A stretch of 64,000 nucleotides of DNA from Anaeramoeba ignava BMAN (taxonomy: Eukaryota; Protista; Anaeramoebae): the NCBI GenBank assembly GCA_028826165.1, contig JAPDFW010000056.1, positions 62,001-126,000 on the forward strand, written 5' to 3'. The translations under genes were made by a program, and so were the position numbers. Shown piece by piece: positions 5,783 to 45,829 of the stretch. The stretch's first letter is position 1; each line of letters begins with the position of its first letter. The notes under the pieces were generated by a model that was not told where the DNA came from, ran no database searches, and saw nothing but the letters and a program-made list of their open reading frames with translations.

Positions 5783-8261
5783 TTAGCAACAACCCTTCTT
5801 TTTAATTGGAGTATCAGGTTCTTTTTGTATAACAACTTGTGTTCCTCCACTTGTTTGAATACTTTGTTTAATTTGTTTTTCTTCATCATCAGGTTTTTTC
5901 ATCATTAATTTATAAATGTCTAATTTTTCCAAAAATTTTAAATTATAAATTATTTTCCAATCTTTTCTTTTTAAATATTTATTTTTATACCATTAAGAAT
6001 TGTTTGGAATGCGAGTTCAACATTTGTTGAATCAAGTGCTGAAGTTTCAATAAACAAAAGTTTATGATCTTCTGAGAATTTACGAGCCTTTTTTTTTTTA
6101 TATATAAATTTTAATTTTCAAAATGAATTTTAATTTTAATTTTGATTTTAATTTTAATTTTAATTTTAATTTTATAAATGAATTTTAATTTTAATTTTAA
6201 TTTTATAAATGAATTTTAATTTTAATTTTAATTTTAATTTTAATTTTTAATTTTAATTTTAATTTTAATTTTAATTTTAATTTTATAAATGAATTTTAAT
6301 TTTAATTTTAATTTTAATTTTAATTTTAATTTTAATTTTAATTTTAATTTTAATTTTAATTTTAATTTTAATTTTAATTTTAATTTTAATTTCAATTTTA
6401 ATTTTAATTTTTTTATAAATGAATTAAATTTTAATTTTAATTTTTTAATTTTATAAATGAATTTTAATTTTAATTTTAATTTTTGATTTTAATTTTATAA
6501 ATTTGAATTTTAATTTTAATTTTATAAATGAATTTTAATTTTATAAATGAATTTTAATTTTAATTTTGATTTTAATTTTATAAATGAATTTTAATTTTAA
6601 TTTTAATTTTAATTTTATAAATGAATTTTAATTTTAATTTTATAAATGAATTTTAATTTTATAAATGAATTTTATAAATGAATTTAATTTTATTTTTAAT
6701 TTATAAAAGAAAAACTACTTGTTCAGTTGGAACAGATCTAAGATGTCTTAAATCAATTTTATTTCCAACAAGCATAATAACAATATTGGAATCAGCATTA
6801 TCTCGTAATTCTTGAAGCCATCTTTCAAGATTCTCAAAAGAAGGATGTTTTGTAATATCATAAATTAATAAGGCACCAACTGCTCCTCGATAATAACTAT
6901 TAATTTTGAGTTTTTAATTTTGAATTTTTAATTTTGAATTTTGAATTTTGAATTTTGAATTTTGAATTTTTAATTTTTAATTTTGAATTTTTAATTTTTA
7001 ATTTTGAATTTTTAATTTTTAATTTTTAATTTTTAATTTTTAATTTTTAATTTTTATAGAGAAAATATACGCTGAAGTAATTGCTCTATATCTTTCTTGT
7101 CCAGCAGTATCCTATTTTAAATTTTAATTTTAATTTTAATTTTAATTTATAAATAAATTTTAATTTTAATTTTAATTTTAATTTTAATTTTAATTTTAAT
7201 TTTAATTTTAATTTTAATTTTAAAAATGAATTTTAAATCTAAATTTAAATCTAAATTTAATTTTAAAAATGAATTTTAATTTTAATTTTAATTTAATTTT
7301 AATTTTAAAAATGAAATTTAATTTTAATTTTAATTCTAATTTTAATTTATAAATAAATTTGAATTTTAATTTTAATTTTAATTTATAAATGAATTTTAAT
7401 TTTAATTTTAATTTTAATTTTAAATCTAAATTTAATTTTAATTTTAATTTTAAATCTAAATTTAAATTTTAATTTTAATTTTAATTTTAATTTTAATTAT
7501 AATTTTAATTTTAATTTTAATTTTAATTTTAATTATAATTTTAATTTATAAATGAATTTAAATTTTAATTTATAAATGAATTTGAATTTGATTAAAAAAA
7601 AAAGAGAAATTCAAACCCAAATTTGAGCTTTCACAGTTTTTCCATCAATTTGAATAGCTTTAGTTGCAAATTCAACACCGATTGTACTTTTACTTTCAAG
7701 ATTAAACTCATTTCTAAAATAAAAAATAAAATAAAAAATAAATTAAAAAGGAAAAAAAAAATAGGAAAAAAAATACTAAATTTACCTGCAAAATCGTGAC
7801 AAAAGATTTGATTTTCCAACACCACTATCACCTTAAAATAATTAAAATAATTAAAGTAAATAAAATAATTAAATTAATTAAAGTAATTAAAAGTAATTAA
7901 AATAATTAAAATAATTAAAATAATTGAAATAATTGAAATAATTAAAATAATTAAAATAATTAAAATAATTAAAATAATTAAAATAATTAAAATAATTAAA
8001 ATAATTAAAATAATTAAAATAATTAAAATAATTAAATTAATTGAAATAATTGTTTTTATTTAATTTTTGATATTTTCAATTCGTTGTTTTTTTGTTGATT
8101 TTAAATTTAAATTGAAAATAAATATAAATACCGATCAAAACAATTTTGAATAAGTAATCATAATCATCTTGAAGATCCACTGTCTAAAATTTATTATAAA
8201 ATTTAAATTAAGACTTAAGAAAAAAAAATTATTTATTTGATAAAATAATTTTAAATACCAT
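5783..8261 (-). CDS. RAB11: Rab11 (copy A, canonical), 8 coding exons
   Basis: [102 protein letters not shown]. Confidence 0.96.
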
Positions 8262-8524
8262 TTTTGTTTTTTAATTTAAACTTAAAATTTGAAAAGAAAA
8301 AAAGAAAAAAAATGAAAAAAAAAAATGAAAAAAAAATGAAAATAAAAAAAAACGTTTTTCTTATTTTTTTTTAACAAAGTAAATTAATTTTTAATAATAA
8401 AAAGAAAGAGGAAAATGATTGATTTAGATTTAAATAAAAAAAAAAAAGAAAAGAAAAGAATAAATTTGAATAAATTTGTTTTATAAATTGATTTCAAAAA
8501 TAATAATTATATTTTTCATATTTT

Positions 8525-10256
8525 TCAACAACATTTTTTCTTTTTTTCAAATTGCGAATCTAAAAAAAGGGTTTCTCTTCTAACTGGCAATTTAGGTTTG
8601 ATAGTAACATTATAAATTTCTAAAAAACAATCAAAAATTTTTTTTAATAAGAAAATATTTTTATCCGAAAATTTTTTTATAAGAAAATATTTTTTTACTA
8701 TTCATTAATTTTGAGAAAGTTTCTTCAACATTTGTTCCATCTTTTGCTGATGTTTCCATAAATAAAATATCATGTTCTTTTGCAAATTTTTCAGCCTTAA
8801 ATTGAAAAAATAAAATAAAATTTTTAAATAAAGAAAATAAAATGAAAAATAAAATAAAAATAAAAACATCTTCTTGTAAAATTTTTCGATCATTTTCTAA
8901 ATCACATTTATTCCCTATTATCATAATAATAGAATTATCTTCTGCTTGTGATTTAAATTCTTGATACCAATCTCCTAATCTTCTGAAACTTAATGGATTA
9001 GTAATATCATAAACAATAAAAGCACCAACTGAACCACGATAATAACTAAATAAATTTAAAATTCATTTATAAAATTAAAATTAAATTTAAAATTCATTTA
9101 TAAAATTAAAATTAAAATTAAAATTAAAATTCATTTATAAAATTAAAATTGAAATTAAAATTAAAATTAAAATAAAAAATTAAAAATAAAAAATAAATTT
9201 AGATTTAAAATTAAAAATTAAAATTAAAATTCATTTTGAAATTAAAATTTAAATCAAAATCAAAATTAAAATCAAAATTAAAATTAAAATTAAAATTAAA
9301 ACTAAAATTAAAATTAAAATTCATTTTGAAATTAAAATTAATATTAAAATTTAAATTCATTTTAAAATTAATATTAAATTTAAATTTAAAATCAAAATTA
9401 AAATCAAAATTAAAATTAAAATCAAAATTAAAATTAAAATTCATTTTGAAAACTAAAATTAAAATTAAATCCAAAATTAAAATTAAAATTAAAATTAAAA
9501 TTAATATTAAATTTAAATTTAAAATTAATCTATAAATACGCCTGTGTTACTGAACGAAATCTTTCTTGGCCTGCTGTGTCCTAAAATATTTGAAAAAATA
9601 AAAATATAAAAATATAAAAATATAAAATAATTTTTAATTTAAATAATTTTCTTTCTTTAATTCAATTTCAAACCCAAATTTGTGCTTTAATTCTTTGTTC
9701 ATTTATTTCAACAATTTTAGATCCAAATTCAACTCCTATTGTAGGCATTGAATCAGGTGCAAATTCATTTCTATATTTTTTTTTCAAAATTTTATAAATA
9801 AAAAATAAAAAATAAAAAATAAAAAATAATCAGTTAAAAACTTACTCACAAAATCTGGTTAAAAGATTAGTTTTTCCGACAGAACTATCACCTAAATATT
9901 ATATCATTAAATATTTTATTATTTAAATAAGTATTTTTTTATTTAATATTTTCTTATTTTTAAATTAAACTAAAAATTGTTTCATTTTTTTTGGATTTTA
10001 AAATAAATACCAATTAATACTATTTTTACAACATGAGTTGGTTCTTCTTGATCACTTTCATTTTCCTAAAAAGATTTATAAAGTAAAATATTGTAAAAAT
10101 ATTTTCATTTTTTATTTTTATTTTTATTTTTATTTTTATTTTTATTTTTATTTTTATTTTTATTTCCATTTTATTTTTTATTTTTATTTTTATTTTAATT
10201 TTAATTTTTATTTTTATTTTTACATCACTATCTGATTGTTGTTGTTTTCGACTCAT
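8525..10256 (-). CDS. Rab11-like paralogue B
   Basis: 8 exons; [37 protein letters not shown]. Confidence 0.9.
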
Positions 10257-10362
10257 TATTTAAAAAAAAATTGAAAGAAAAAAAATGAAAAAATGAAAAA
10301 AATGAAAAAAAATTTGGATTATTTTTTTGTTTTTTTTATTTAAAAAATCATTAACAAAATTT

Positions 10363-12038
10363 TCAACAACAACCTTTTTTTTGTTTTTGATAATGTGGAT
10401 TTATTATTTTCAATGGATCATCTTCATATTTCTTTTTTGCCAAAACATTATAAATTTCTAATCAAAAAAATTAAATCAAAAAAATTAAATCAAAAAAATT
10501 AAATTAAAAAAATTAAATCAAAAAAATTAAATTAAAAAAATTACCTTCTATTAATGTTCTAAAAGCATATTCAACATTTGTTCCATCTTTTGCTGATGTT
10601 TCAATGAATGAAAGTCCATTTTCTTTTGCAAAATTTTCACCCTTAATTTATAATTAATTTAATGAAAAAAGAAAAATTTTTTCGAAATTAAAAAAAAAGT
10701 GGAACAAAAAAATAATAAAATAAAAAATAAACCATTTCTTTTGAAATTTCTCTTTCTTTTTCTAAATCACATTTATTTCCAATTATCATTGGAATAGCAT
10801 TTAATTCTGATTGTTCTTTGAATTCTCTAACCCAATCATCTAATCTTTCAAAACTTTCTGAATTAGTAATATCATAAACAATAAAAGCACCAATAGAACT
10901 ACGATAATAACTAAAAAATAAGAAATTGAAAATTTTTAATTTAATTCAATTTAAATTTTTGATTTGAATTGATTTAAATTGAAATGATTTAAATTGAAAT
11001 TGAATTTAAATTGAATTTGAATTTGAATTTGAATTTAAATTTGAATTTGAATTTGAATTTGAATTGAATTGAATTTGAATTTGGATTTAATTTGAATTTG
11101 AATTTGAATTGAATTTAAATTGATTTGATTTGAATTGATTTGAATTGAATTTTTAATTTGAATATTTAATTTGAATTTTTAATTTGAATTGATTTGAATT
11201 TAAATTTGAATTTAATTTAATTTGAATTTGAATTTAATTTGATTTAATTTGATTTAATTTGATTTTAATTTGAATTTTTAATTTGAATTTTTAATTTGAA
11301 TTTTTAATTTGAATTTTTAATTTGAATTTCAAATTGGAAATTTTTTTTCCGATTTCCCATTTTTTTAAATTTTATAAAAATTAATCTATAAATACACTTG
11401 TGTTACTGAACGAAATCTTTCTTGGCCTGCTGTGTCCTAAAATATTTGAAAAAATAAAAATATAAAAATATAAAAATATAAAATAATTTTTAATTTAAAT
11501 AATTTTCTTTCTTTAATTCAATTTCAAACCCAAATTTGTGCTTTAATTATTTGTTCATTTATTTCAACAATTTTAGATCCAAATTCAACTCCTATTGTAG
11601 GCATTGAATCAGATGTAAATTCATTTCTATATTTTTTTTTCAAAATTTTATAAATAAAAAATAAAAATAAAAAAATAAAAAATAATCAGTTAAAAACTTA
11701 CTCACAAAATCTGGTTAAAAGATTAGTTTTTCCAACAGAACTATCACCTAAATATTATATCATTAAATATTATATTATTTAAATAAGTATTTTTTTATTT
11801 AATATTTTATTATTTTTAAATTAAATTAAAAATTGTTTCATTTTTTTTTGGATTTTAAAATAAATACCAATTAATACTATTTTTACAACATGAGTTGGTT
11901 CTTCTTGATTTATTCCATTTCGCTAAAAATATTTATAAAGTAAAATATTGTAAAAATATTTTCATTTTTGATTATTTTTTTCTTAAATAGTTTCATTTAA
12001 TTTTAATTTACCCTTTTATTATTTTGTTTTCGATTCAT
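10363..12038 (-). CDS. Rab11-like paralogue C
   Basis: 8 exons; exons 2-5 nearly identical to B; GNKCD, ETSAK, GCC*. Confidence 0.9.
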
Positions 12039-12137: not shown

Positions 12138-14756
12138 TCAACAACATTTATCTTCACTTTTTTTTGAATTAGAATTAAGAATAATAGTATCTTTTAGATT
12201 ATTTTGGTTTTTTTTAGAAGCAACAATTTCTAAAATTTCAAATCAAAATCAAAATTAAATCAAAATTAAATCAAATTAAATCAAATTAAATCAAATCAAA
12301 TCAAAATTAAATCAAAATTAAATCAAATCAAAATCAAAATTAAATCAAAATTAAATCAAAATCAAATCAAATCAAAATCAAATCAAATCAAAATTAAATC
12401 AAAATTAAATCAAAATCAAATCAAATCAAAATCAAATCAAATCAAAATTAAATCAAAATTAAATCAAATCAAATCAAAATTAAATCAAAATTAAATCAAA
12501 ATTAAAATCAAAATTAAATCAAAATTAAATCAAAATTAAATCAAAATTAAATCAAAATTAAATCAAAATTAAATCAAATTAAATCAAAATTAAATCAAAA
12601 TTAAATCAAAATTAAATCAAATCAAAATTAAATCAAAATTAAATCAAAATTAAATCAAAATCAAATCAAAATTAAATCAAAATTAAATCAAAATTAAAAT
12701 TAAATCAAAATTAAATCAAAATTAAATCAAATCAAAATTAAATCAAATCAAAATCAAATCAAAATCAAATCAAATCAAAATCAAATCAAAATCAAATTAA
12801 ATCAAAATTAAATCAAAATTAAAATTAAATCAAAATTAAATCAAAATTAAATCAAAATTAAATCAAAATTAAATCAAAATTAAATCAAAATTAAATCAAA
12901 ATCAAATCAAAATTAAATCAAAATTAAATCAAAATTAAATCAAAATTAAATCAAAATTAAATCAAAATTAAATCAAAATTAAATCAAAATTAAATCAAAA
13001 TTAAATCAAAATTAAATCAAAATTAAATCAAAATTAAATCAAAATTAAATCAAAATTAAATCAAAATTAAATCAAAATTAAATCAAAATTAAATCAAAAT
13101 TAAATCAAAATTAAATCAAAATTAAATCAAAATTAAATCAAATCAAATCAAATCAAATCAAAATTAAATCAAAATCAAAATTAAATCAAATTAAATCAAA
13201 TCAAAAAAAATTAAATCAAAATTAAATCAAAATTAAATCAAAATTAAATCAAAATTAAATCAAAATTAAATCAAAATTAAATCAAAATTAAATCAAAATT
13301 AAATCAAATCAAAATTAAATCAAAATCAAATTTAAATCAAATTAAATTAAATTAAATTAAATTAAATCAAATTTAAATCAAATTAAATTAAATTAAATCA
13401 AAATTAAATCAAAATCAAATCAAAATTAAATCGAAATTAAATCAAAATTAAATCAAAATTAAATCAATAAATACGCTCTATTAATGTTCTAAAAGCCTTT
13501 TCAACATTTGTTCCATCTTTTGCTGATGTTTCCATGAATAAAACTTTATTTTCTTTTGCAAAATTTTCACCCTTAATTTATAATTAATTTTATAAAAAAA
13601 ATTTTCGAAATTAAAAAAAAAGTGGAACAAAAAATGGAACAAAAAATGGAACAAAAAATAATAAATAAATAAACCTTTTCTTTTGAAATTTTTCTTTTAT
13701 CTTCTAAATCACATTTATTTCCAATTATCATAAACATTGCATTTGTTTGCTCTTGTGATTTAAGTTCTTTAACCCAATAATCTAATTTATTGAAACTAGT
13801 TTGACTAGTAATATCATAAACAATAAAAATTAAAACAAATTAAATAAAAGTGCCATCTGAACCTCGATAAAAACTAAATAAATCAAATCAAATCAAATCA
13901 AAATTAAATCAAAATTAAATCAAAATTAAATCAAATCAAATCAAAATTAAATCAAAATTAAATCAAAATTAAATCAAAATTAAATCAAAATTAAATCAAA
14001 ATTAAATCAAATTAAAAAATTAAATCAAATTAAATCAAATTAAATCAAATTAAATTAAATTAAATCAAAATTAAATCAAATCAAAATTAAATCAAAATTA
14101 AATTAAATTGATTTCGAATTAAATCAAAAATTCAAATTAAATACCTTTTAGTTATTGACCGAAATCTTTCTTGGCCTGCTGTGTCCTAAAATATTCAAAA
14201 AATAAAACAAAATGAAAATTTTAATCCAAATTTTGGATTGATTTTTATGTTTTTGTTTTTATTTTGTTTTTGTTTTTGTTTTTCATCAATTACCCAAATT
14301 AGTAGTTTTACTTTTTTATCATTAACTTCAACTATTTTTGTTTTAAATGAAGCTCCTAATGTAATTTCCGAATTTTCAAAAAATTTATCACTTTTTAAAC
14401 GGAAAATATTACAAGATAATAATTGTTATTTTTATTATTAAATTTGGAATTTAAAAAAGGAAAAAAACTTACTCACAAAATTTAGTTAAAATATTTGTTT
14501 TTCCAACAGAACTGTGTCCTAAATATTATTAATATTAAATTTAGTAATGAATACATTTTTAAATTTAATAATAATAGTAATAATAATGATAATATCTACC
14601 AATTAGAATAATTTTAAGTGTCAAATCATATTCAGTTTTAGAATTATCAATTTTCTGAAAAAGGAAAAAATTAATTAATTAATTAATTTATCAATAAACG
14701 AATTGTTTTTTTTTTCTATTATTATTTTATCAATAATTTACTTCAAATGATTCCAT
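12138..14756 (-). pseudogene. Rab paralogue D with an in-frame stop
   Basis: All 8 exons present ([26 protein letters not shown]), but a 21-nt insertion in exon 6 puts TAA in frame at 13842-13840. Confidence 0.75.
12240..13465. repeat. AAATCAAAATT 11-mer tandem repeat filling the last intron of copy D
   Basis: About 1.2 kb of near-perfect tandem units. Confidence 0.92.
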
Positions 14757-15024: not shown

Positions 15025-15823
15025 TTAACAACAACCAGACTTTGTTTTTCGATTTGAATTTGGATTTTGATTTTGATTTGGACCACTGAGGATGATACTA
15101 TTTGTTAAATTATTTTTTTTTTGGGAAACACTCAAAATTTCTATTAAAAAATTAAAATCAAAATTAAATTAAAAATCAAAATTAAAATCAAAATCAAAAC
15201 CAAAATCAAAATACCTTTTGTTAATACTTCGAATGCTTCTTCAATATTTGTTCCATCTTTTGCTGATGTTTCCATGAATAAAACATCATTTTCTTTTGCA
15301 AATTTTTCACCCTTAATTTATAATTAATTTTATAAAAAAAATTTTCGAAATTAAAAAAAAAGTGGAACAAAAAATGGAACAAAAATAATAAATAAACAAA
15401 CAAACCTTTTCTTTTGAAATTTTTCTTTTATCTTCTAAATCACATTTATTTCCAATTATCATAAACATTGCATTTGCTTGCTCTTGTGATTTAAGTTCTT
15501 TAATCCAGTAATCTAATTTATTAAAACTTTCTGGATTAGTAATATCATAAACAATAAAAACACCATTCGAACTCCGATAATAACTGAATGAATAAATTAA
15601 TATAAAATAAATTAATATAAAATCAATCAATCAATCAATCAATATAAAATCAATAAATCAATATAAAAATAAATCAATAAAAAATCAATATAAAATCAAT
15701 AAATCAATATAAAATAAATCAATCTAAAATCTCAATCAATATAAATCAATAAATCAATAAATCAATAAATCAATAAATCAATAAATCAATAAATCAATAA
15801 ATCAATAAATCAATATATCAATA

Positions 15824-15858
<35 letters not shown>

Positions 15859-16940
15859 AAATCAATAAATCAATAAATCAATATATCAATATAAAATCAA
15901 TAAATCAATCAATAAATATAATCAATATAAAATCAATATAAAAATCAATAAATATAAAATAAATCAATAAATCAATAAATCAATAAATCAATAAATCAAT
16001 AAATCAATAAATCAATAAATCAATAAATAAAATAAATAAATCAATAAATCAATATCAATCAATATAAAATCAAATAAAATCAATAAATCAATAAATCAAT
16101 AAATCAATAAATCAATAAATCAATAAATCAATAAATCAATAAATCAATAAATCAATAAATCAATATATCAATATATCAATATATCAATATAAAATCAATC
16201 AATATAAAATCAATATAAAATCAATCAATATTAAATCAATAATAAATCAATGATAAATCAATGTAAAATAAATATAAAATGAAATACAGTTTAGTCATTG
16301 ATTGATATCTTTCTTGACCTGCTGTATCCTAAAATAAACAAAATCAATAACAATTTTTTTAATAAAAATCCAAATTTTGAATTGATTATTTTTATTTTGT
16401 ATTTTTTACCCAAATTCGTAGTTCCACTTTTTTATCATTAATTTCAACTATTTGTGTTTTATATTCAACACCGATTGTAATTTGGAAATTTTCAGAAAAT
16501 TGATTACTTTTTAAATAATAGAATAATAGAATAATATTATTATTAATTTGGAATTAAATTGGAATTTAAAAAAGGAAAAAAAACTTACTCACAAAATTTA
16601 GTTAAAATATTTGTTTTTCCAACACCAGTGTGTCCTAAATATTATTAGTAATATTGATAATAATAATATTGTTATTATTTTTGTTTTGGAATTTAAAAAT
16701 AATATTTAGAATAATAAAATATTTACCAATTAAAATAAGTTTAAAATTAAAATCACAAGGAGTTGCAGAAAAATCAATTTTCTATAAAAAAAAGAAACAA
16801 GATTAATTAAAAATTAAAAGTAATTTTATTTTGGAAATTAAATTTTTAAATAAGTAAATTATTTTTATTTTTCAATTTTCTAATTTTCTAATTTTCTGAT
16901 TTTTATTTTATTAATAAATTACTTTAAATGATTCTATCAT
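15025..16940 (-). CDS. Rab paralogue E
   Basis: [37 protein letters not shown]. Confidence 0.9.
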
Positions 16941-17125: not shown

Positions 17126-18033
17126 TTAACAACAACCAGCTTTTGTTTTTCGATTTAAATTTGGAGAACTAATGATAATACTATCTGTTTGAGTATTTTC
17201 TTTCTTTTTTTCAAAATTATTCAAAATTTCTATTAAAAAATTAAATTTAGAATTAAAATCAAAATTAAATTTAGAATTAAAATTAAAATCAAAATTAAAT
17301 TAAAAATCAAAATTAAAATTAAATCAAAATTAAAATCAAAACCAAAATTAAAATACCTTTTGTTAATGCTTCAAATGCCTCTTCAATATTTGTTCCTTCT
17401 TTTGCTGATGTTTCCATGAATAAAACATCATTTTTGTTTGCAAATTTTCACCCTTAATTTATAATTAATTTTATGAAAAAAATTTTCGAAATTAAAAAAA
17501 AAAGTGGAACAAAAAATGGAACAAAAAATAATAAATAAACAAACCTTTTCTTTTGAAATTTTTCTTTTATCTTCCAAATCACATTTATTTCCAAGTATCA
17601 TAAGCATTGCATTTGTTTGCTCTTGTGATTTAAGATCTTTAATCCAGTAATCTAATTTATTAAAACTTTCTGGATTAGTAATATCATAAACAATAAAAAC
17701 ACCATCAGAATTCCGATAAAAACTAAATCAATCAATCAATAAATAAATCAATATAAATCAATCAATAAAAAATCAATTAATATAAAATAAATCAATATAA
17801 AATCAATAAATCAATATTAAATCAATAAATCAATATTAAATCAATAAATCAATATTAAATCAATAAATCAATATTAAATCAATAAATCAATATTAAATCA
17901 ATAAATCAATAAATCAATATATCAATAAATCAATCAATATAAAATCAATATAAAATCAATAAATCAATATTAAATCAATAAATCAATAAATCAATAAATC
18001 AATATTAAATCAATGTAAATCAATAAATCAATA

Positions 18034-18064
<31 letters not shown>

Positions 18065-18200
18065 ATTAAATCAGTGTAAAATAAATCAATATTAAATCAA
18101 TAAATTAAATATATCAATAAATATAAAATCAATATCAAATCAATATAAAATCAATAAATCAATATATCAATATATCAATCAATATATCAATAAATAAATA

Positions 18201-18231
<31 letters not shown>

Positions 18232-32000: not shown

Positions 32001-33561
32001 CTATAATTCAGATTCTGAACACAACCCAGAATCAGTATCAGAAAAGGAAGAGTCATATAGTGAATCTGAAGAAGAAATGAATAACGACTGAGTTTAAGAG
32101 ATAAACCATCTTCAAGATCTAAAAATAATCTTTGAGAATTTTCTTGGATTTGATTTTATTTTATTAATTTGTCAGCAATGACTGGAAGATTTCTCTGGGG
32201 AAATCCCTTCAAATAAAATAAAAATAAAATTTTATTTTTCATTTTCCATTTTCTTTTTACAGAATGAACAATTTTGAAAAAGTTAAAAAAAATCAAGAAA
32301 GTATGTATCAAAAAAAAAAGAATAAATCATAACAACTAACTTCTGTGAATACTTTATTCTCACTTCTGGAAATTTAGATTTAATTCTTTTTTTTTTGATC
32401 ACAAATTTGTATCGACTTAATAAATTAAAATTAGATGGTGTACTTCAACATCTTATGACAATTGAAAGTGCAAAAGAATGTTTTGAATTTGAGATTCCTT
32501 TTCTCTTTGATATCAGATTTGACAGATTTTATACATCTCAAGAGGAGAAACAGTTATTCGATAATGAATTGGAGATTTCTTATGTTTTGTTTTCATTTCC
32601 AATTTTTTTCTCAGTAAAACTTAAATGAAATTGAATTGGGATTTGAATCCCTGAATCCAGAAGATCAAAAAAAAAAGAAAATAATTTTTCAAATGTTGAT
32701 TTTTAAAGATTTTCAAGTATATTCAACTTGAAATCGTACTTTTCTTCTTTTTTTTTCTTCAAATAAAACAATAAAAACAACAGTTCCACAAAACTCAAGA
32801 AGGTGAAAATTTCTCTTTTTTTTTTTGGATAAGAACAAAACAAGATTTCAAATCATTAAAAACAATTCACTTTCATTTTTATTGTTTTTTTCTTTTTTTT
32901 TGTTTTAGATTTTTATTCAACCCTTTTATCAAAATTCTCATTTTAATCAGAAAAAAAGTGAGTTCTATTACACTTTTTGATTCAAGAAGAAAATCAATAC
33001 AATACATGAAATCCTAAAAAATTTTAGTCTCAAACCTAACGAGAATAAAACGGTGGTAACAAGAAAACTGAATAAAGTTGCTTATCTTAGAATAATTCTC
33101 AAATAAATATTTTTTATAATTCTTACCCAAGTTTGTAATTGAATTTTCTTTCCTTTAATTTCAAGAATTATATTGGCAAATTCAGCACCAATTGTAGTTT
33201 TTGAATTTGAGTTAAATTCATTTCTTTTATAAATTAAAATAAAAAAAAAAATAAAATTATTACTTTGAAAATAAAGTTAAAATTTACTTTTGAAATCTAC
33301 TAATAATATTTGTTTTTCCAGCTGCCTTACTTCCTAATAATTATTTAATTATTCAAATATTATTCAAATATTATTTAATTATTATTTTTCAAATAAATAT
33401 TTTACCAATTAAAATAACTTTAAATGAATGATCATATTTTTCATTTTCTTTCTAAATATTTTATTTTTGATTTTTATTTAAAAAATAATAATAAATTTTT
33501 ATTAATTTAAAACGAAAAAAAAAAGAAATTAATTAATAAAAAATAAAACCTTAGATTCCAT
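29009..33561 (-). CDS. Rab paralogue K; all exons intact but intron 4 expanded to ~3.5 kb by inserted DNA
   Basis: GSKAAGKT, TTIGAEF, DTSGEERY, GNKFD, ETSAK, SSCC*. Exons 5-8 at 29009-29644, exons 1-4 at ~33126-33561. Confidence 0.6.
29712..33105 (+). mobile_element. Transposon-associated insert in intron 4 of K with an internal direct duplication
   Basis: ~29608-30840 repeats at ~31348-32490. The right part matches the right end of the insert in J. Contains broken charged/coiled-coil reading frames. Confidence 0.6.
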
Positions 33562-33671: not shown

Positions 33672-35495
33672 TTAACAACATGAACCATCATTTTCTGGTT
33701 TAGTAATTCTGTTAGAAAGTTTAATACTATTAATTTTAGTAACAATTTCATTTTCAAAAACATTTAAAATTGCTAAAATTAAAATTAAAATCAAAATTAA
33801 AATCAAAATTTAAATTTAAATTTAAAATTATAATAAAAATACCTTTTGTTAATGCTTCGAATGCCTCTTGAATATTTGTTCCATCTTTTGCTGAAGTTTC
33901 CATGAATAAACATGTTTTGTCGTTTGCAAAATTTTGACCCTTAATTAATAAATAATTTTGAAAAAAATAAAAATTTTCAAATTAAAAAAAAAAGTGGAAC
34001 AAAAAAATAATAAATAAACAAACCATTTCTTTTGAAATTTTTCTTTGTTTTTCTAAATCACATTTATTTCCAATTATTATTGGAACTGCATTCTCTTGTG
34101 CATTTTTTCGAAATTCTTCAAGCCAAAATTTTAATTTATTAAAACTTTCTTCATTAGTTATATCATAAACAATAAAAGCACCAACTGCATCACGATAATA
34201 ACTAAATAAACAATTTATAAATATTTATCAGTAACTTGATTCTAATAATTAAAATAAAGAAAAATATAAACACATTTTTGAAAATGAAAGATATCTTTCT
34301 TCACCTGCTGTATCCTAAAAAATCAAAAATAAAATTAAATTTAAATTTAAATTAAAATTAAAATTAAAATTAAAATTAAAATCAAAATCAAAATTAAAAT
34401 TAAAATCAATATTAAAATTAAAATCAATATCAAAATTAAAATTAAAATCAAAATCAATATCAATATCAATTTCAATATCAATATCAATATCAATATCAAT
34501 ATCAAAATCAATATCAATATCAATATCAATATCAATATCAATATCAATATCAATATCAATATCAAAATAAATATCAAAATAAAAATCAATATCAATATCA
34601 AAATCAATATCAATATCAATATCAATATCAATATCAATATCAATATCAATATCAATATCAATATCAATATCAATATCAATATCAATATCAATATCAATAT
34701 CAATATCAATATCAATATCAATATCAATATCAATATCAATATCAATATCAATATCAATATCAATATCAAAATCAAAATCAATATCAAAATCAAAATCAAT
34801 ATCAATATCAATATCAATATCAATATCAATATCAATATCAATATCAATATCAATATCAATATCAATATCAATATCAATATCAATATCAAAATCAATATCA
34901 ATATCAATATCAATATCAATATCAATATCAATATCAAAATAAATATCAAAATCAAAATTAAAATCAAAATCAAAATCAAAATTAATATTAAATCAAAATT
35001 AAAATCAAAATTAATATCAATATCAAAATTAAAATTAAAATCAAAATATTTTTTATAATTCTTACCCAAATTTTTAGTTGAAATTTCTTTCCTTTAATTT
35101 CAAAAATTCTACTAACAAAATCAGCACCAATTGTAGCTTTTAAATTTGGATTAAATTCATTTCTTTTATAAATTAAATTAAAATAAAAAAATAAGAATAA
35201 AATTATTGCTTTGGAAATAAAGTTAAAATTTACTTTTGAAATCTATTGAGAATATTTGTTTTTCCAACAGCACTATTTCCTAAATATTATTCAATTATTT
35301 AATTATTATTTAATTATTATTTTTGAAATAAATATTTTACCAATTAAAATAACTTTAAATGAACGATCATATTTTTCATTCTCTTTCTAAATATTTTATT
35401 TTTGATTTTTATTTAAAAAATAATAATAAATTTTTATTAATTTAAAACGAAAAAAAATGAAATTAATTAATAAAAAATAAAACCTTAGATTCCAT
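33672..35495 (-). CDS. Rab paralogue L
   Basis: GNSAVGKT, ATIGADF, DTAGEERY, GNKCD, ETSAK, GSCC*. Confidence 0.88.
34345..35040. repeat. (AATATC)n hexamer tract in intron 4 of L; the same unit fills intron 4 of M at 36440-36890
   Basis: Long near-perfect hexamer run; source of the spurious poly-IL and poly-DI ORFs. Confidence 0.92.
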
Positions 35496-35623: not shown

Positions 35624-37329
35624 TTAACAACATGAACGACGCTTTTCTGAATGAGGATTATTAATATTAATATTATCTTTCTTTTGTTGTTTGTTTTCAA
35701 AAACATTTAAAATTTCTATTTAAAAAATTAAAATTAAAATTTAAATTAAAATTAAAATTAAAATTAAAATTAAAATTAAAAATAAAAATAAAAATAAAAT
35801 TAAAATTAAAATTATAATTAAAATTAAAATTAAAATTATAATTAAAATTATAATTAAAATTAAATTTAAAATTAAAATTAAAATTAAAATTAAAATTAAA
35901 ATTAAAATTAAAATTAAAATTAAAATTAAAATTACCTGTTGCTAACATTTGGAATACTTCTTCAATATTTGTTCCATCTTTTGCTGAAGTTTCCATGAAT
36001 AAAGCTTTATTTTTTTTTGCAAATTTTTCACCCTTAATTAATAAATAATTTTATAAAAAAAAAAATATAAATAAAATAAAAAGTGGAACAAAAAAATAAA
36101 TTAAAAAAAAGTGGAACAAAAAAATAAAAAATAAACAAACCTTTTCTTTTGGAATTTTTCTATCTTTTTCTAAATCACATTTATTTCCAATTATCATTGG
36201 AACTGCACTTTCTTGTGCATTTTTTTGAAATTCTACAATCCAATTTTCTAATTCATTAAAACTGTCTTCATTAGTTATATCATAAACAATAAAAGCACCA
36301 TTTGAACCACGATAATAACTAATTATATTTAATTTATAAAAATTTTTTTGATAAATGTGATTTAATTTATTAAAATATAAAAAAATATAAATACGATTGA
36401 GTTATTGAACGAAAAATTTCTTGACCTGCTGTATCCTAAAAAATTAAAATTAAAAATTCAAAATCAAAATTAAAATTAAAATCAAAATTAAAATTAATAT
36501 CAATATCAATATCAAAATCAAAATCAATATCAATATCAATATCAATATCAATATCAATATCAATATCAATATCAATATCAATATCAATATCAAAATCAAA
36601 ATTAAAATTAAAATTAAAATCAAAATTAAAATTAATATCAATATCAATATCAAAATCAAAATCAATATCAATATCAATATCAATATCAATATCAATATCA
36701 ATATCAAAATCAAAATCAATATCAAAATCAATATCAAAATCAATATCAAAATCAATATCAATATCAATATCAAAATTAAAATCAATATCAATATCAAAAT
36801 TAAAATCAATATCAATATCAATATCAATATTAATATCAATATCAATATCAATATTAATATCAAAATTCAAAATCAAAATTAAAATTAAAATCAAAATATT
36901 TTTTATAATTCTTACCCAAACTTTTAATTGAATTTTCTTTCCTTTAATTTCAAGAATTCTACTACCAAATTCAACACCAATTGTAGTTTGTGTATTTAAA
37001 CTAAATTCATTTCTTTTATAAATTAAAATTAAAATAAAAAAATAAGAATAAAATTATTGCTTTGGAAATAAAGTTAAAATTTACTTGTGAAATCTACTGA
37101 GAATATTTGTTTTTCCAACAGCACTATTTCCTAAATATTATTCAATTATTTAATTATTATTTAAATTTTATTTTTTTTTTAAATAAATATTTTACCAATT
37201 AAAATAGCTTTAAATGGATAATCAAAATGTTCCTATATTTTATTTTATATTTTAATTTAAAAATAATAATAAATTTAATAATAATAAATTTTAATAAAAA
37301 ATTGAAATAATCAAAACCTCAAATTCCAT
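35624..37329 (-). CDS. Rab paralogue M
   Basis: GNSAVGKT, TTIGVEF, DTAGQEIF, GNKCD, ETSAK, RSCC*. Confidence 0.88.
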
Positions 37330-37467: not shown

Positions 37468-37950
37468 TTAACAACATGAACGACGCTTTTCTGAATGAGG
37501 ATTATTAATATTAATATTATCTTTCTTTTGTTGTTTGTTTTCAAAAACATTTAAAATTTCTATTTAAAAAATTAAAATTAAAATTATAATTAAAATTAAA
37601 ATTAAAATTAAAATTAAAATTAAAATTAAAATTAAAATTAAAATTTAAAATTAAAATTAAAATCAAAAATACCTGTTGCTAACATTTGGAATACCTCTTC
37701 AATATTTTTTCCATCTTTTGCTGAAGTTTCCATGAATAAAGCTTTATTTTTTTTTGCAAATTTTTCACCCTTAATTAATAAATAATTTTATAAAAAAAAA
37801 ATATAAATAAAATAAAAAGTGGAACAAAAAAATAAATTAAAAAAAAGTGGAATAAAAAAATAATAACTAATATTTAATTTATAAAAATTTTTTGATAAAT
37901 GTGATCAATCTCAAAAAAAATTTGAATTATTTTGAAACCTTTTTCTCCAT
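37468..37950 (-). pseudogene. Rab remnant N: exon 1 (MEKK) plus exons 7-8 nearly identical to M; exons 2-6 missing
   Basis: 37420-37860 duplicates 35575-36125, then a fragment of intron 5, then ATGGAGAAAAAG|GT at 37950. Confidence 0.85.
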
Positions 37951-38051: not shown

Positions 38052-39806
38052 TCAACAACATTTCTTTTTTTTTGATGGTTTCCTTAAATTAATTGTTGAG
38101 ATATCGTTGTTATTTTCATAATTATTATAAGCATCTAAATTAACAAAAAAAAAATCAATCAAAAAATTTTTCAATTAAATTTAAATTAAAAAATACCAGT
38201 TATTAATGTTTTAAAAGCTTTATCAACATTTGTTCCATCTTTTGCTGAAGTTTCCATAAACAAAATATTATTTTTTTTTGCGAACTTCTCACCCTTTTTA
38301 AATTTTAATTAAAAAATTAAATTAAAAGAAAAAGTGGAACAAAAATCAAAAAATCAAAAAATCAAAAAAAACCTTTTCTTTTGGAACTTTTCTAAGTTTT
38401 GCCAAATCAGATTTATTTCCAATTAGCATAGTAACAATATTTTTCTTTACTTTATCTCTGAGTTCTTTAATCCAGTATTTAATTTGTTTGAAACTTTCTT
38501 TGTTAGTGATATCATAAACAATAAAAGCGCCATATGAACCACGATAATAACTAAATATTTGAATATAAATATTTGAATATAAATATTTGAATATAAATAT
38601 TTGAATATAAATATTTGAATATAAATATTTGAATATAAATATTTGAATATAAATATTTGAATATAAATATTTGAATATAAATATTTGAATATAAATATTT
38701 GGATATAAATATAATAAATATTTTAATATAAATATTTGAATATAAATATTTGAATATAAATATTTGGATATAAATATAATAAATATTTTTAAATATAAAT
38801 ATTTGAATAATAAATATTTGAATATAAATATAAATATTTGAATATAAATATTCAAATATAAATATTTGGATAAATATTTAAATATAAATATTTAAAATGA
38901 ATAAAATAAATAAAATAAATATTTAAAATGAATATAAATATTTGGATATAAATATTTGGATATAAATATTTGAATATAAATATTTGAATATAAATATTTA
39001 AATATTTAAATATAATAAATATTTAAATATAAATATTTGAATATAAATATTTAAATAATATTTGAATAATATTTGGATATAAATATTTGGATATAAATAA
39101 TATAAATATTTGAATATAAATATTTAAATAATATAAATATTTGAATATAAATATTTAAAAGAATATTTGAATATAAATATAAAAAATGAATATAAATATT
39201 TAAATAATATAAATATTTGAATAAATTTAAATACACTTGAGTCACCGAACGAAATCTTTCTTGACCTGCTGTATCCTTTTATAATAATGATATTATATTT
39301 AATACATTCTTTAAAAGAAGTATTAAAATTATTTAAATCCTTACCCAAATTTGTACTTTGACTTTTTTATCATGAATTTGTAATATTTTTGATTCAAATT
39401 CAACACCGATTGTAGCTTTTGTATCTGATGTGAAAGTTTTACTTTATTAAACAAAATTATTTTTTTTTCCGATTTTTAAATTCATTTTGAAAATCAATTT
39501 ATTTTTTTTAAAAATCAGGAAAAAAAAATTTTTACTTGCAATATTGAGTTAAAAGATTTGTTTTCCCAACATAACTATTGCCTAAATGAGTGTATAAATA
39601 AATTACTATCTTTTTATAATTATTATCTAAAATAATTATTTACCAATTAAAACAATTTTAAATATACAATCATATTCTTCTTCTTTGTCTAAAGAATTTT
39701 GCTAAAAATAAAATTTATTAATAATTTAATAAAGAAATTTATCAAGAAATTTAATAAAGGAATTTAAAAAGAAATTTAATAAGAAAATATAAACCCGTTT
39801 TTCCAT
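38052..39806 (-). CDS. Rab paralogue O
   Basis: [37 protein letters not shown]. Intron 5 is filled by an AATATAAATATTTG 14-mer (38552-39230). Confidence 0.9.
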
Positions 39807-39907: not shown

Positions 39908-41363
39908 TTAACAACATTTTCCTTCTGTTGTCTTTTCTTCTTTATAATTATATAAATTAATAGGAGGTGGTGTTAATTTTTTTTTGGAAAAAACATTATA
40001 AATCTCTAAATAAATCAAATATAAAATTAAAATTAAAATTAAAAATTTAAAATAAAATAAAAATACCAGTTATTAATGTTTCAAAAGCTTTATGAACATT
40101 TGTTCCATCTTTTGCTGAAGTTTCCATAAACAAAAAATTCTTTTCTGCTGCGAATTTTTGACCCTTTTTAAATTCAAAAAAAAAAAATTAAATTCAAAAA
40201 AAAAAAAGTGGAACAAAAAATTTAATAAAAAAATAAACCTTTTCTTTTGAGATTTTTCGTTTATCACTTAAATCAGATTTATTTCCAATTATCATAATAA
40301 CGACATTTTGATCTGTTTGATCTTTAAAGTCATTAATCCAGTATTCTAATTTTTCGAAACTTTCTTCATCAGCGATATCATAAACAATAAAAGCGCCATA
40401 TGAACCACGATAATAACTAAATATTTAAAAGAATATTTAAATAAAATAAATATTTAAATATTTAGATAAAATAATAAATATTTAAATAAAATAAATAATT
40501 AAATATTTGGATAATAAATAAAATAAATATTTAAATATTTGGATAAAATAAATATTTGGATAATATAGATAATAAATATTTAAATAAAATAATAAATATT
40601 TAAATATTTAAATATTTGGATAAAATAATAAATATTTGGATAAAATAATAAATATTTAAATAAAATAAATATTTGGATAATAAATATTTAAATATTTGGA
40701 TAATATAAATAATAAATATTTGGATAATATAGATAATAAATATTTAAATAAAATAAATATAAATACGCTCTAGTCACAGATCGAAATCTTTCTTGACCTG
40801 CTGTATCCTTTTATAAGAATAAGATTATACTTAATAATTAATACTTAATATTTTTTTTTAAAAGAAGATTCAAAAGTATTCAATTCCTTACCCAAATTTG
40901 TAATTGAATTGTTTCATTGTTTATTTTAAATACCTTTGAACTAAATTCAACTCCAATTGTAGATGTTGATTCTGTTGTAAAAGTATTACTTTATTAAACA
41001 ATAAAATTTTTCCGATTTAAGAAAAAACAAACAAAAAAAGGAAATTTTTTATAAACAAAAATTTTTTACTATCGATATCGAGTTAAAAGGTTTGTTTTCC
41101 CAACATGAGTATTACCTAAATAAATAATTAAATAAATCAATAATTAATTAATTAATTAAATCAATAAATCAATAAATCAATAATTAAATCATTTACCAAT
41201 TAAAACAACTTTAAATACATGAGAATAAAGTGATAATTCATTATCTAAATTTCTTTCCTAAAAAAAAAAGAAATAAGAAAATTGTGTGTATTTTGTTTCC
41301 TTTAAGTAAATGATGCTTAGTTTTAAAAAAAATGTAAATTAAATTGAAAACCTTTTGTTGCAT
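39908..41363 (-). CDS. Rab paralogue P
   Basis: [37 protein letters not shown]. Confidence 0.9.
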
Positions 41364-41560
41364 ATTGATAAGAATTTTTCTTGAATAAAAAAAAAAATGA
41401 TTTCTTCTTTTTCATTTTAAAAATTATTTTTATAACAAATATCAAAAAAAAATATAAAAATTTTAATTTTAATTTTAATTTTAATTTTAATAATAATTAT
41501 AATTATAATAAATCCAAAAAAAATTTTTTAATTTGAGTTTTTTTTTCCGAATTTGAAAAA

Positions 41561-44051
41561 TTAACACCAACGACGTTTTTTTTTTGGTTTTTTTGAGTTT
41601 TTTAGAATAACTTTATGCTTTTGTTTTTGTTTTTGTTTTTGTTGTTCTTGTTCTTTTTCTTGTTGAAGATCCTCTTTTTGTTGAATAAAAGCATTATGAA
41701 CCTCTAAAAATCAATAACAACAATAAGAATAATAAGAATAAGAATAAGAATAATAATAATAAGAATAAGAATAAGAATAAGAATAATAAAATACCAGCTA
41801 TCATTGTTTGAAAAGCATTTTGAATATTTGTTCCATCTTTTGCTGAAGTTTCTAAAAATAAAAGATTATTTTCTTTTGCAAAATTTTCACCCTATTCAAT
41901 ATTAAATATTAAATATTAAGTATTAAATATTAAACATTAAATATTAAACATTAAATATTAAATATTAAATATTAAATATTAAATATAAAAAAGATTAAAT
42001 ATTAAAATTAAAATATTAAATATTAAATATTAAATAAAATTAAAATTAAATATTAAATATTAAATATTAAAGATTAAATATTAAATATTAAATATTAAAG
42101 ATTAAATATTAAAGATTAAATATTAAAGATTAAATATTAAATATTAAATATTAAATATTAAAGATTATTAAATATTAAATATTAAATATTAAATATTAAA
42201 TATTAAAGATTAATTATTAAATATTAAACCATTTCTTTTGAAACTTGTCGAGTTTGTTCTAAATCACATTTATTTCCAAGTATCATAACAATAGCATTTT
42301 CTTTGGCACTTTCTCTGAAATTTTTTATTGATTCTCAAATATTAAAAAAAAATTTTTTCAAAAACTTTTTCAAACTTGTTGTATCACAAAAACAATAAAT
42401 TAAATATTTTATTAAAACTGAACATTAAACGAAAATTAAAGCTATTTATTTATAAATATTATATTTAGATATTTAGATATTTAGATATTTAGATATTTAG
42501 ATATTTAGATATTTAGATATTTAGATATTTAGACAATTTAAATATTTATTAAAGGATATTTAAATATAAAATTATTAAATATCAAATATTTATTGAAAAA
42601 TATTAAATATTATTTATAAATATTATTAAATATTTTAGATATTTAAAGGATATTTAAATATTAAATAGAAAATATTTAATATAAATTTAGGATGTTTGGG
42701 AAATATTAAAAGATTAAATTTAAATATTAAATATTTAGGATATTTGGGATATTTTTAAATATTAAAATTAATATTAAACAAAATATTAAATAAAAATATT
42801 AAAGATTAAAATTTAGATATTTTTTTTAGATATAAAATTAAATATTAAATATTAAAGGATTATTTATTAAATATTAAATATTAAATATTAAATATTAAAT
42901 ATTAAATATGTTTAAAGGATTAAATATTAAATTTTGATTAAATATTAAATATAGATTAATTAAATATTTAAATATAGATATTTATAAATATAAATATTTA
43001 AATATTAAATAAATATTATATTTAAATATTAAAGATTAAATATTTAAATGATAAATAAGGATATTAAAGATTAAATATTATATTTATTATATTAAATAAA
43101 TATTATATTTAAATTAATATTCTTTAGGATATTTTATAAATATTAAAATATTTAGATATTTTTGAAATAAATATTATATTTAGATATTATTTTATAAAAT
43201 TTTATATTTAGATATTATTTAGATATTTAGATATTTAGGATATTTAGATAAATGAAATTATATTATTTATGTTTTAGATATTTAGGATATTTTTAGGATA
43301 TTTAGATATTTAGATATTTAGGATATTTAGATATTTAGATATTTTAGATATTTATTTATATTTTTTAGATATTTATTTAAATATTTATAAATATATTTGG
43401 ATAAACTACTTTTGAGTAAGTGCTTTCTGAAATCTTTCTTGACCAGCAGTATCCTAAAAAAATTTTTTAAAAAAGATAAACAAAAATATTTTTCATTACA
43501 AATTAATTAATTACCCAAATTTGAGCAGAAATAAATTTCCCATCAAACTGAACTTCTTTTGTTTTAAAATCAACACCAATAGTTGGTTTTATATTGAAAT
43601 TAAAATTTTTGCTTTAAAGAAAGATAAAATTATTATTTTTAAAACTTTAAGAAACTTTTGTTTTAAAATCAACACCAATAGTTGGTTTTATATTGAAATT
43701 AAAATTTTTGCTTTAAAGAAAGATAAAATTATTATTTTTAAAACTTTAAGAAAAGTAAGTAAAACTTACTCACAAAAACGAAGTAAAATATTTGTTTTTC
43801 CAACAGCATGAGAACCTATTAAAAATTGAAGGTTTAAAGCCTTTTATTTAAGTTTATTTTATTTAATTTAATTTTTAATTTTTAATTTTGTTTACCAATC
43901 ATAACAAATTTAAATGCTAATCTTCTTTCTGTTTCTTTCTTTTAAATAAATTTGTTAGAAATTAGAAATTAGAAATTATTAATTTATTAATTTATTAATT
44001 TATTAAATTCTGTTTTTATTTGTGTATTTTATTTTTTACAACTTCTGCCAT
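41561..44051 (-). pseudogene. Rab paralogue Q; 5' half of exon 6 scrambled (pseudogene or poor consensus)
   Basis: [39 protein letters not shown]. 42320-42440 has no open frame; 99-bp duplication over the exon 4 acceptor. Confidence 0.6.
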
Positions 44052-44204
44052 ATTTTATATTTTATATTTTAAATTTTTGGAAAAGAAAAAAAATGAAATT
44101 TTGGAAAAGAGAATTTATTGATCAAAAATATTCAATAAAAAAGAAAAAAAGAAAAAAGTTTTTTGATATTTTGAAAATAAATTAAATTTAAATTCAAATT
44201 AAAA

Positions 44205-45829
44205 TTAACAACATTTCTTAGATTTTTTAATTGAATTATTAAGATTAATTGAAGGTGTTTGTGATTTATTTAAATTTATGTTTGTTTTTATGTTTTTAAA
44301 AGGTTCTTCTTTTAAATCAAGAATTTCTAAAAATCAAAAAATTAAAAGAAAATATCAATTTAAATTAATAAATAAATAAATAATAAATAAATAAATAAAA
44401 TACTTCTAAGAAGACTATAAAAGGAATCATTAACATTTTCTCCAGTTTTTGCAGAAGTTTCCATAAATAAAAGGTTATTTTCTTTTGAGAATTGGTGACC
44501 CTTTAAAAGTAGAACAATAATAATTAAAATAAAATTAAAATTAAAATTAAAATTAAAATAATAACTTGTTCTAATGAAACTTGTCTTTTTTCTTCCAAAT
44601 CAATTTTATTTCCAATAGCCATAATTGCAATATCAGGTAAAGTTTTTCTTAATGATTGAAGCCAATTTTTTGCTTTTTCTATAGAGTTTAAATGTGTGAT
44701 ATCATAAACAAGAAAAGCTCCATGTGAATTACGATAAGATCTAGAAAGATAAATTAAATTAAAAATGAAATTACAAATGAATTTTTAGATTTAAATATAT
44801 ATTTTAGATTTAAATATTTATTTTAAATTTAAATATTTATTTTAAATTTAAATATTTATTTTGGATTTAAATATTTATTTTTGATTTAAATATTTATTTT
44901 TGATTTAAATATTTATTTTTGATTTAAATATTTATTTTGGATTTAAATATTTATTTTGGATTTAAATATTTATTTTGGATTTAAATATTTATTTTAAATT
45001 TAAATATTTATTTTGGATTTAAATATTTATTTTTGATTTAAATATTTATTTTTGATTTAAATATTTATTTTGGATTTAAATATTTATTTTGGATTTAAAT
45101 ATTTATTTTGGATTTAAATATTTATTTTGGATTTAAATATTTATTTTGGATTTAAATATTTATTTTGGATTTAAATATTTATTTTGGATTTAAATATTTA
45201 TTTTTAGATTTAAATATTTATTTTGGATTTAATAAATATATTTGGTTTTGTGTTTTAATATAAACAATTCTGCTACTGAGCGATATCTTTCTTGACCAGC
45301 AGTATCCTAAAAAATTGATATAAAATATTTTTCATAAATTAAATTTAATTGAACATTTTTTTTGGAAAGAAAAATAACCCAAATTTCAACACGGAACTTA
45401 TTTCCATTCAATTCAATAGATTTTGATTTAAAATCAACACCAATAGTTGCATTTGGTGATTCATTAAAAGTATTTCTAAATAATAAATAAAAGAATAAAT
45501 AAAAGAGTAAAAAAATTAAGGGATAAATAAAAGAATAATAAATAAAAGGGGATTATATTTTTACTCGCAAACACGAAGTATAAATTGGGTTTTTCCAACA
45601 TTAGTTTCTCCTAAAAAAATATTATTTTGGATTAAATAGAATTTTTATTATTTTATTTATTTTGATTAAATAAAAAAATTTACCAACAATAACAATTTTT
45701 ACTCGAGTTTCTTTTTCTCCATTATCATTTACCTTTATGAAAAAAAAAAAGAGGAAAATTAAATTTTTGATGATTTGAAAAAAAAAGAAAATAAAGAGAA
45801 AATTAATTTACAAATGAATTAAAATCCAT
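44205..45829 (-). CDS. Rab paralogue R (most divergent)
   Basis: [36 protein letters not shown]; same 7 intron positions. A 19-mer AAATATTTATTTTGGATTT repeat fills intron 5 (44790-45235). Confidence 0.88.

Follow-up and report, generated by a model that had tools for sequence, protein, structure and literature searches.

A tandem Rab GTPase array of probable Rab11-type origin, with rapid gain and loss of copies, in Anaeramoeba ignava

The stretch of DNA analysed here, 64,000 nucleotides from the protist Anaeramoeba ignava BMAN (GenBank contig JAPDFW010000056.1, positions 62,001 to 126,000; hereafter the window), carries 18 Rab GTPase loci in a row at window positions 5783-45829, all of them on the minus strand and here called A to R. 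Rab GTPases serve as labels for the membrane compartments of the eukaryotic cell, and they normally evolve slowly and are easy to classify. We consider it probable that the row is a species-specific tandem Rab family of Rab11-type origin, made by unequal crossing-over and subject to rapid gain and loss, and that its intact copies are membrane switches. Repeated unequal crossing-over, starting from an intron-rich gene of the Rab11 type, would have built the array beside copy A, which is a canonical Rab11. Copies would have been gained, recombined into mosaics and lost, and the present state, with 12 intact and 6 broken loci, would be the outcome. The copies have kept the Rab core (the P-loop GKT, WDTxGxE, GNKxDL and ETSAK, together with the RabF motifs and a CC end for prenylation), and the intact copies may act as membrane-bound switches on Rab11-like routes, recycling or exocytic, with partner specificities that have diverged.

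The array was delimited by a scan for GTPase motifs and by spliced alignment. With about 15% G+C the window is extremely rich in A and T, and the G1, G4 and G5 motifs and the CC-stop ends recur at regular spacing on its minus strand between 5.8 and 45.7 kb. The loci were modelled with a purpose-written protein-to-genome aligner with phased GT-AG introns, copy A having first been read by eye. Twelve copies are intact (A, B, C, E, G, H, K, L, M, O, P and R), and each of them has eight exons, GT-AG at all introns, 199-216 amino acids, no internal stop and a CC end. Their core exons measure 46, 97, 41, 178 and 97 nt, with 175 nt for the fourth of these in R, and the first exon is very short, only the ATG in A and 4-11 codons in the other intact copies. 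The remaining six loci of the 18 (D, F, I, J, N and Q) are broken. CC followed by a stop ends 17 of the 18 loci, the exception being Q, which ends in ...RRWC. The array corresponds to M0811_05448 to about 05469 in GenBank, on the contig that we call C57, and the genes and their order are the same in the public annotation. Seven GenBank proteins of A. ignava agree exactly with our spliced models, namely those of B, C, E, H, L, M and P, and on the strength of these exact matches a dictyostelid origin, at first suggested by the 15% G+C, was rejected. For D and I the GenBank models bypass the damaged parts by splicing. An earlier reading made from the sequence only had described an 18-locus tandem Rab array, with A followed by 17 paralogues or remnants on one strand, an eight-exon structure common to the complete copies and a CC end in all but Q. 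The motif scan and the spliced models bear out each of these points, and the strand is the minus strand.

The array genes are clearly recognisable as Rabs. GxxxxGK[ST], WDTxGxE, GNKxDL and ETSA[KL] were found in all 12 intact copies, and the GenBank proteins that are identical to our models have a precomputed match to the Pfam Ras family (PF00071). In the alignment the RabF motifs, judged by eye, read TIGVEF or TIGAEF, K.QIW, RFRS[IV]T, YYR[GSD]. and F[IV]VYDIT; Pereira-Leal and Seabra reportedly gave them in 2000 as IGVDF, KLQIW, RFRSIT, YYRGA and LVYDIT. Set against canonical Rab11 (Ypt31-32 and RABA included), of which A is a member, B-R share the exon-intron structure, the RabF motifs and the CC end of A, but their P-loop is G-x-x-x-x-GKT, with the residues before GKT varying from copy to copy, and not GDSGVGKS. 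Another departure is the catalytic glutamine of WDTAGQE, which is a glutamate in K (29603-29643) and L (34274-34314) and also in the broken copy I (23912-23952), the motif of these copies being WDTSGEE or WDTAGEE. The same exchange is seen in a dispersed Rab11-like gene on contig C49 (locus L003), and it suggests that GTP hydrolysis is altered. A ciliate genetic code was considered for the genome and rejected, as genes end in TAA as well as TGA and the intronless GTPases have no in-frame TAA.

The strongest indication of the parentage of the array comes from its introns. Numbered by residue and phase in A, the introns of A and of all B-R lie at 18/1, 33/2, 66/0, 79/2, 139/0 and 171/1, and B-R thus share six of six positions and phases in the G domain with A. 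Twenty other Rab loci of the genome were modelled for comparison. The Rab11-like genes at C59:527k and on C49 have the same six introns, and four or five of these are present in the genes on C24, C106, C131, C99 and C115. None is shared by a Rab1-like gene on C130 (21/1, 33/0, 49/0, 65/0, 82/2), by a Rab1-like array on C82 (33/0, 49/0, 65/0, 141/0), by the Rab-BTB arrays on C59 and C81 (71/1, 79/1) or by the Rab8/35-like group (65/0, 69/1, 141/0). A protein search for Rab2 returned A. flamelloides Rab2 only, which was used as a stand-in; two such genes (47/1, 66/0, 164/0, about 187/0) have one of the six array positions in common. Since six identical positions and phases are found together only in Rab11 genes, B-R are best explained as descendants of a Rab11-type gene. 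The parent would then be a gene of the Rab11 type, though not necessarily A itself. As a separate observation, the Rab8/35-like group (L008, L010, L012, L019 and L020) has an exon of 13 nt that encodes only the W-D-T-A of G3.

Protein similarity agrees with this in part. The sequence searches were made with single exons, with one stop-free stretch of B running from exon 6 through the intron into exon 7, and with database proteins identical to our models. Copy A had been taken for a canonical Rab11 from the sequence only, and rightly so: in a search of the PDB its exon 6 matches human Rab11A with 99 bits and the next family, Rab2, with 62, and a published orthogroup table places M0811_05448 with human Rab11a/b (Jerlstrom-Hultqvist et al. 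2024, Nat Commun; PMC11550330). The comparison of whole proteins with solved structures covers B, E, H, L, M and P, by way of their database-identical proteins, and not G, K, O and R. A member of the Rab11 family is the best match for four of these six: Rab11 for B (189 bits; runner-up Rab14, 179), Ypt31 for L (173; Rab8A, 163), Rab11A for M (189; Rab2A, 176.5) and Rab11A/B for P (201; Rab2A, 175). The automatic GenBank names of array neighbours range over rab-8b, rab-10, rab-11a, rab-11c, raba5, raba4d-like, rab-37 and "ras and EF-hand domain", and from this spread it follows that the array genes classify poorly by similarity.

The family has no close relative outside the array and is lineage-specific. 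B-R are only 41-51% identical to A. With M as the query, the best matches are its array neighbours at 54-66% identity, and everything else, A. flamelloides included, is at most 50% identical; the matches of B outside the array are likewise at most 50%. The protein database of these searches includes the A. flamelloides proteomes, and the lineage specificity of the locus, which had been put forward from the sequence only, thereby holds. One-to-one orthologues in this sister species were not found, the best A. flamelloides match being 50% identical. The published orthogroup table leaves 13 array genes as UNCLASSIFIED, puts C, E and one more in a human Rab22 group that has no A. flamelloides member, and lists M (05463) in an Anaeramoeba-only orthogroup with six A. 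flamelloides genes; besides A, 16 of the 17 array genes that it lists have no A. flamelloides partner (PMC11550330). The identity between M and its six partners is low.

The order and the similarity of the copies are those of a family in turnover. In a self-comparison of the window the units are 73-96% identical, most of them 73-90%. B and C are 94.6% identical over the 5' 650 nt, introns included, and about 76% in the 3' half. A block of 2.1 kb, which runs from the insert in J through J exons 1-4 to K exons 5-8, matches at 92% a K-L block that runs from the insert in the K intron through K exons 1-4 to L exons 5-8. In the same way a stretch from L into M matches a stretch from M into N at 87%, and the remnant N is 96% identical to M. 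Units that are offset from the gene borders, hybrid genes and truncated copies fit unequal crossing-over with loss of genes. Tandem paralogues, interleaved pseudogenes and mosaic or offset duplications are all present, as in a multigene family under birth-and-death evolution. The turnover of this kind that had been proposed from the sequence is thereby supported, with intact, lightly damaged and wrecked copies lying side by side.

The intact copies are clearly maintained, as is seen from their open frames and from their G motifs, which are invariant across them. With an AT-weighted spectrum of mutations, 8-9% of all single substitutions create a stop, and the probability that a frame is still open after 50 changes is about 0.01. 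The residues that change fast lie in the switch and interswitch regions, in alpha3/alpha4 and in the tail. For young pairs omega by the NG86 method is 0.6-2.2, and in four pairs the exons have diverged more than the short introns: E-F (7.5% vs 1.8%, odds ratio 4.4), E-G (15.4% vs 4.3%, 4.0), K-L (12.3% vs 4.0%, 3.3) and I-K (12.5% vs 5.1%, 2.6), with p<=5e-5 for each of them and with intron indels not counted as differences. In a version based on codon alignments the values are 0.182 vs 0.043 for E-G and 0.133 vs 0.040 for K-L. No exon excess was found in D-E and D-F, nor, in the codon-alignment version, in K-M and O-P. Only 0-8% of the four-fold sites are different within the seven youngest pairs, and amino-acid-changing codons stand to synonymous ones as 20:6 to 49:3 (152 core codons). 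The differences are clustered, for example, between E and F, at the variable P-loop residues and in the beta2-beta3 hairpin; a count of those E-F exon differences whose variants also occur in other copies, made with gene conversion in mind, was not decisive. When changes at codon positions 1+2 are polarised they have no bias towards A/T, and AT-to-GC changes are at least as many as GC-to-AT changes in eight of ten lineages, which argues against simple decay, even if parsimony can inflate the AT-to-GC counts. Diversifying selection, and not relaxed constraint alone, may lie behind the fast change of these proteins.

Several observations weigh against the reading that we prefer, and they are best considered together with the other explanations to which they lend support. 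Among solved structures E is closest to Rab8A (183 bits; Rab11 164) and H to Rab10 (185 bits; runner-up Rab11, 171), and in this too the two differ from canonical Rab11. In a maximum-likelihood (ML) tree of 49 sequences, with a reference set that is small and biased, A joins the Rab11 clade, as do dispersed Rab11-like genes of A. ignava, while B-P form a weak group of their own (73/99) outside that clade and R sits on a long branch elsewhere. An exon-wise search of the genome gave no clear A. ignava orthologue of Rab2, Rab4 or Rab14 for the intron comparison. With the Rab22 label of C and E added, one could argue that B-R come from some other subfamily (Rab8/10 or Rab2-like) and merely adjoin a Rab11 gene. 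The tree itself does not settle the matter: approximately unbiased (AU) tests did not reject B-R as one clade (p=0.31) or B-R with Rab11 (p=0.24), and B-R with Rab2/4 is equally allowed (p=0.21). As p exceeds 0.2 in all three tests the tree cannot decide, and protein trees are uninformative for placing B-R; a like difficulty with these proteins is reported in PMC11550330. Of the derivation from Rab11 that had been proposed from the sequence, the part that concerns gene structure therefore stands, and the expected place of B-R inside the Rab11 clade was not recovered, the AU tests rejecting neither Rab11 nor Rab2/4. We still regard another subfamily as an improbable source, for all six introns agree in position and phase with Rab11 paralogues, not one of the six occurs in the Rab8/35-like or Rab1-like genes and just one in A. 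flamelloides Rab2, and B, L, M and P match Rab11 best. An artefact of the assembly, in which repeats were expanded or mis-joined and single-base lesions are sequencing errors, could for its part appeal to the microsatellites that fill the introns and to copy F, whose only lesion is one base in an A-run. That the whole array or a part of it arose in this way is nevertheless very hard to believe: the identity between any two units is 96% at most, D, I, J, N and Q carry structural lesions, and public annotation agrees on the genes and their order. Units that are only 73-96% identical are not assembly duplicates, and the collapse of the copies as such duplicates, which the sequence-only reading had named among the things that would overturn it, is not what was found.

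What the copies are for is a different matter. They could be redundant duplicates under relaxed constraint, a decaying heap of genes with no specialised function that changes by neutral drift and AT mutation bias. A third of the loci are already broken; ML omega, with codon bias corrected, is 0.2-0.86; and the synonymous differences in exons also exceed the divergence of introns. Omega values in that range mean that the exon excess could have a source other than selection, for instance a higher mutability of G/C sites or short conversion limited to exons. As to expression, K is the only array member with transcript support, from a EukProt transcript of A. ignava (P0009, 201 amino acids) that is 99% identical to it and spliced across the 3.5 kb of intron 4. 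EukProt has no protein at least 90% identical to B, C, E, H, I, L, M, O or P, an absence that is weak negative evidence on expression. Against mere decay speak the 12 frames that have stayed open in spite of the many substitutions that give a stop, the GTP-binding motifs, RabF motifs and CC end that are invariant across the intact copies, and the missing A/T bias at codon positions 1+2 in eight of ten lineages. We therefore think it unlikely, if far from absurd, that the array is such a heap. A more speculative thought, to which we would give about the same modest weight, is that the locus generates diversity: its intact copies would be kept open and competent for GTP, and their partner surfaces would be driven apart by positive selection or by exchange limited to exons, in a pattern like that of immune and surface gene families. 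Relatives of the bacteria of Anaeramoeba are known to target host Rabs. One driver of such a locus could be the dealings of Anaeramoeba, in conflict or negotiation, with the bacteria inside its cells and in its symbiosome. The sequence-only reading had likewise proposed that the locus may serve a specialised compartment or an interaction with bacteria. The reading that we prefer, a species-specific tandem family of Rab11-type origin with rapid turnover, is in our opinion still the probable one.

The individual loci, all on the minus strand, are as follows. A (5783..8261) is the canonical Rab11, with eight exons, 216 amino acids and an end in GCC (GenBank M0811_05448). The two that follow are intact and have models equal to GenBank proteins, B (8525..10256; 213 amino acids, P0001) and C (10363..12038; 211 amino acids, P0003). 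D (12138..14756) is a pseudogene in which a 21-nt insertion with an in-frame TAA interrupts exon 6 near 13830; the GenBank model P0088 skips the region of the lesion, and intron 7 consists of 1.2 kb of an 11-mer repeat. E (15025..16940) is intact with 215 amino acids and identical to P0002. The sole lesion of F (17126..19051) is the loss of one A from the run of As with which exon 7 starts, near position 17445. F has otherwise an open frame and a CC end, and is either a young pseudogene or an assembly error. G (19282..21022) and H (21213..23101; identical to P0033) are intact and both have 210 amino acids. I (23289..24622) is a pseudogene, for which GenBank M0811_05456 (P0005) skips the lesion: its exon 4 (24283-24194) has a partial duplication and a frameshift and has lost its 3' end and the donor site. 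J (24736..28913) is a wreck that begins with ATA in place of ATG, and in which an insert of about 3.5 kb replaces exons 5-7; exons 1-4 (28913-28467) and exon 8 (24792-24736) are what remains. The exons of K (29009..33561; 201 amino acids) are intact around an intron 4 of 3483 nt (29644-33126). L (33672..35495; 205 amino acids, P0006), with WDTAGEE as its G3, and M (35624..37329; 199 amino acids, P0004) are intact and identical to GenBank proteins, and N (37468..37772) is a remnant of M-like sequence with exons 7-8 only. O (38052..39806) has an intact canonical GT-AG model of eight exons and 203 amino acids; the GenBank model P0008 (191 amino acids, 'raba4d-like') lacks the beta1 strand and the end of beta3, and the public annotation of this copy is likely mis-spliced. 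P (39908..41363) is intact with 209 amino acids and identical to P0007. Q (41561..44051) is a pseudogene with two stops and a frameshift in exon 6 and the aberrant C-terminus mentioned above, and it holds a perfect 99-bp duplication (43556-43753) that takes in part of exon 4. R (44205..45829), with 214 amino acids, is intact and the most divergent member; the exon of 175 nt is its exon 6.

The sequence-only reading was right that intact, frameshifted and truncated copies are interleaved, and it had also spoken of copies broken by transposons. This last applies to J only, and the insert there is old, degenerate and MULE-like. It contains a remnant of a MULE-like transposase on the plus strand (25777..27596), degenerate and in three pieces of open reading frame (ORF), with a Pfam match to MULE (PF10551, E=2e-5) at 25.3 bits, under the curated cut-off of 27.6, and a weak zf-BED match. 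The remnant is 34-40% identical to ORFs of 486-748 amino acids on other contigs. A search of the genome found no copies of it elsewhere at the DNA level, and for this reason we regard the insert as old and rule out a recently active transposon. Within intron 4 of K there are direct repeats of 836 bp (98%) and also sequence that agrees with the J insert at 92-96% identity. In almost all array genes one intron, 0.35-1.3 kb long, is filled with microsatellite sequence, usually intron 5 and in K-M intron 4 (examples are 6107-7571, 9051-9528, 12246-13467, 15587-16262, 34381-35044 and 44783-45232), and the repeated unit varies by copy among 6-, 7-, 8-, 11-, 12-, 14- and 19-mers.

Around the array lie other genes and simple repeats. 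Directly downstream of copy A, and outside the Rab array, there is a Ras/Rap-type small GTPase gene (4235-5391, minus strand; YDPTIAETY, IIDTAGQEEY), whose introns at 22/1, 46/1, 80/0 and 127/1 are unlike those of the array. On the other side an intronless ORF of 683 amino acids (46316-48367, plus strand) has hydrophobic stretches and a G+C of 0.28, which is above its surroundings; it matches no Pfam family. Farther out on that side a gene encodes a Sas10 C-terminal domain (E=1e-15; 53150-55107, minus strand), and since this gene and further ORFs lie beyond R, the array ends at R. Simple repeats on the kilobase scale occupy positions 1-2000 of the window (G+C 0.4%) and 48700-51800 (about 5%).

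The abundance of Rabs in Anaeramoeba is not new. Jerlstrom-Hultqvist et al. (2024, Nat Commun; PMC11550330) reported very many of them (almost 400 in A. flamelloides) and found 75-80% unclassifiable; they named Rab11 among the expanded families and discussed a possible link between the expansion and the symbiosome. Their data concern the same organism and the same genes, with A listed under Rab11, and the array described here is a well-documented example of a phenomenon that is already published. The main text and supplements of PMC11550330 make no mention of a tandem arrangement of Rabs, nor do they describe for this array a Rab11 origin read from gene structure, its pseudogenes and mosaics, or the excess of exon over intron divergence. 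New are thus the tandem birth-and-death layout, the assignment to Rab11 by introns and the exons that diverge faster than introns. The same genome has more than 1000 candidate matches to the Ras superfamily and many tandem arrays of small GTPases, and the notion that tandem Rab arrays are exceptional, which had made the locus look unusual when read from its sequence, does not hold for it. Further arrays were found at C82:184-216 kb (L013, L014), C59:155-168 kb (L015), C81:344-352 kb (L016), C101:161-179 kb, C60:775-794 kb and C61:204-235 kb. In the C59 and C81 arrays the Rab domains are followed by long C-terminal frames (Rab-BTB), and several others are intronless. The arrays on C82, C59 and C81 are also tandem on one strand, with 10-30 diverged copies, but they have other parent subfamilies and other intron positions, whereas the array in the window is tied to Rab11. 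Many species-specific Rab paralogues that are hard to classify are found in phagotrophic protists, namely Trichomonas, Entamoeba and ciliates (Elias et al. 2012, as cited in PMC11550330). In the A. ignava array the origin can be traced, as it seems, by six introns, one third of the loci are dead or dying, and the exons of young pairs differ more than their introns. A 2026 preprint describes a Legionellales symbiont of A. pumila that has effector candidates with GTPase-like domains, which gives a reason to ask about a bacterial link of the array but is not evidence for one.

A. ignava, in which the array is found, keeps bacteria within an elaborate system of membranes. Where protein trees fail, orphan Rabs can still be assigned to a parent subfamily by the intron positions that they have retained, and at least part of the Rab expansion arises by tandem duplication with rapid turnover. 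Should selection be the cause of the excess of exon over intron divergence, the array would offer a rare example in which a core trafficking switch evolves like a repertoire gene.

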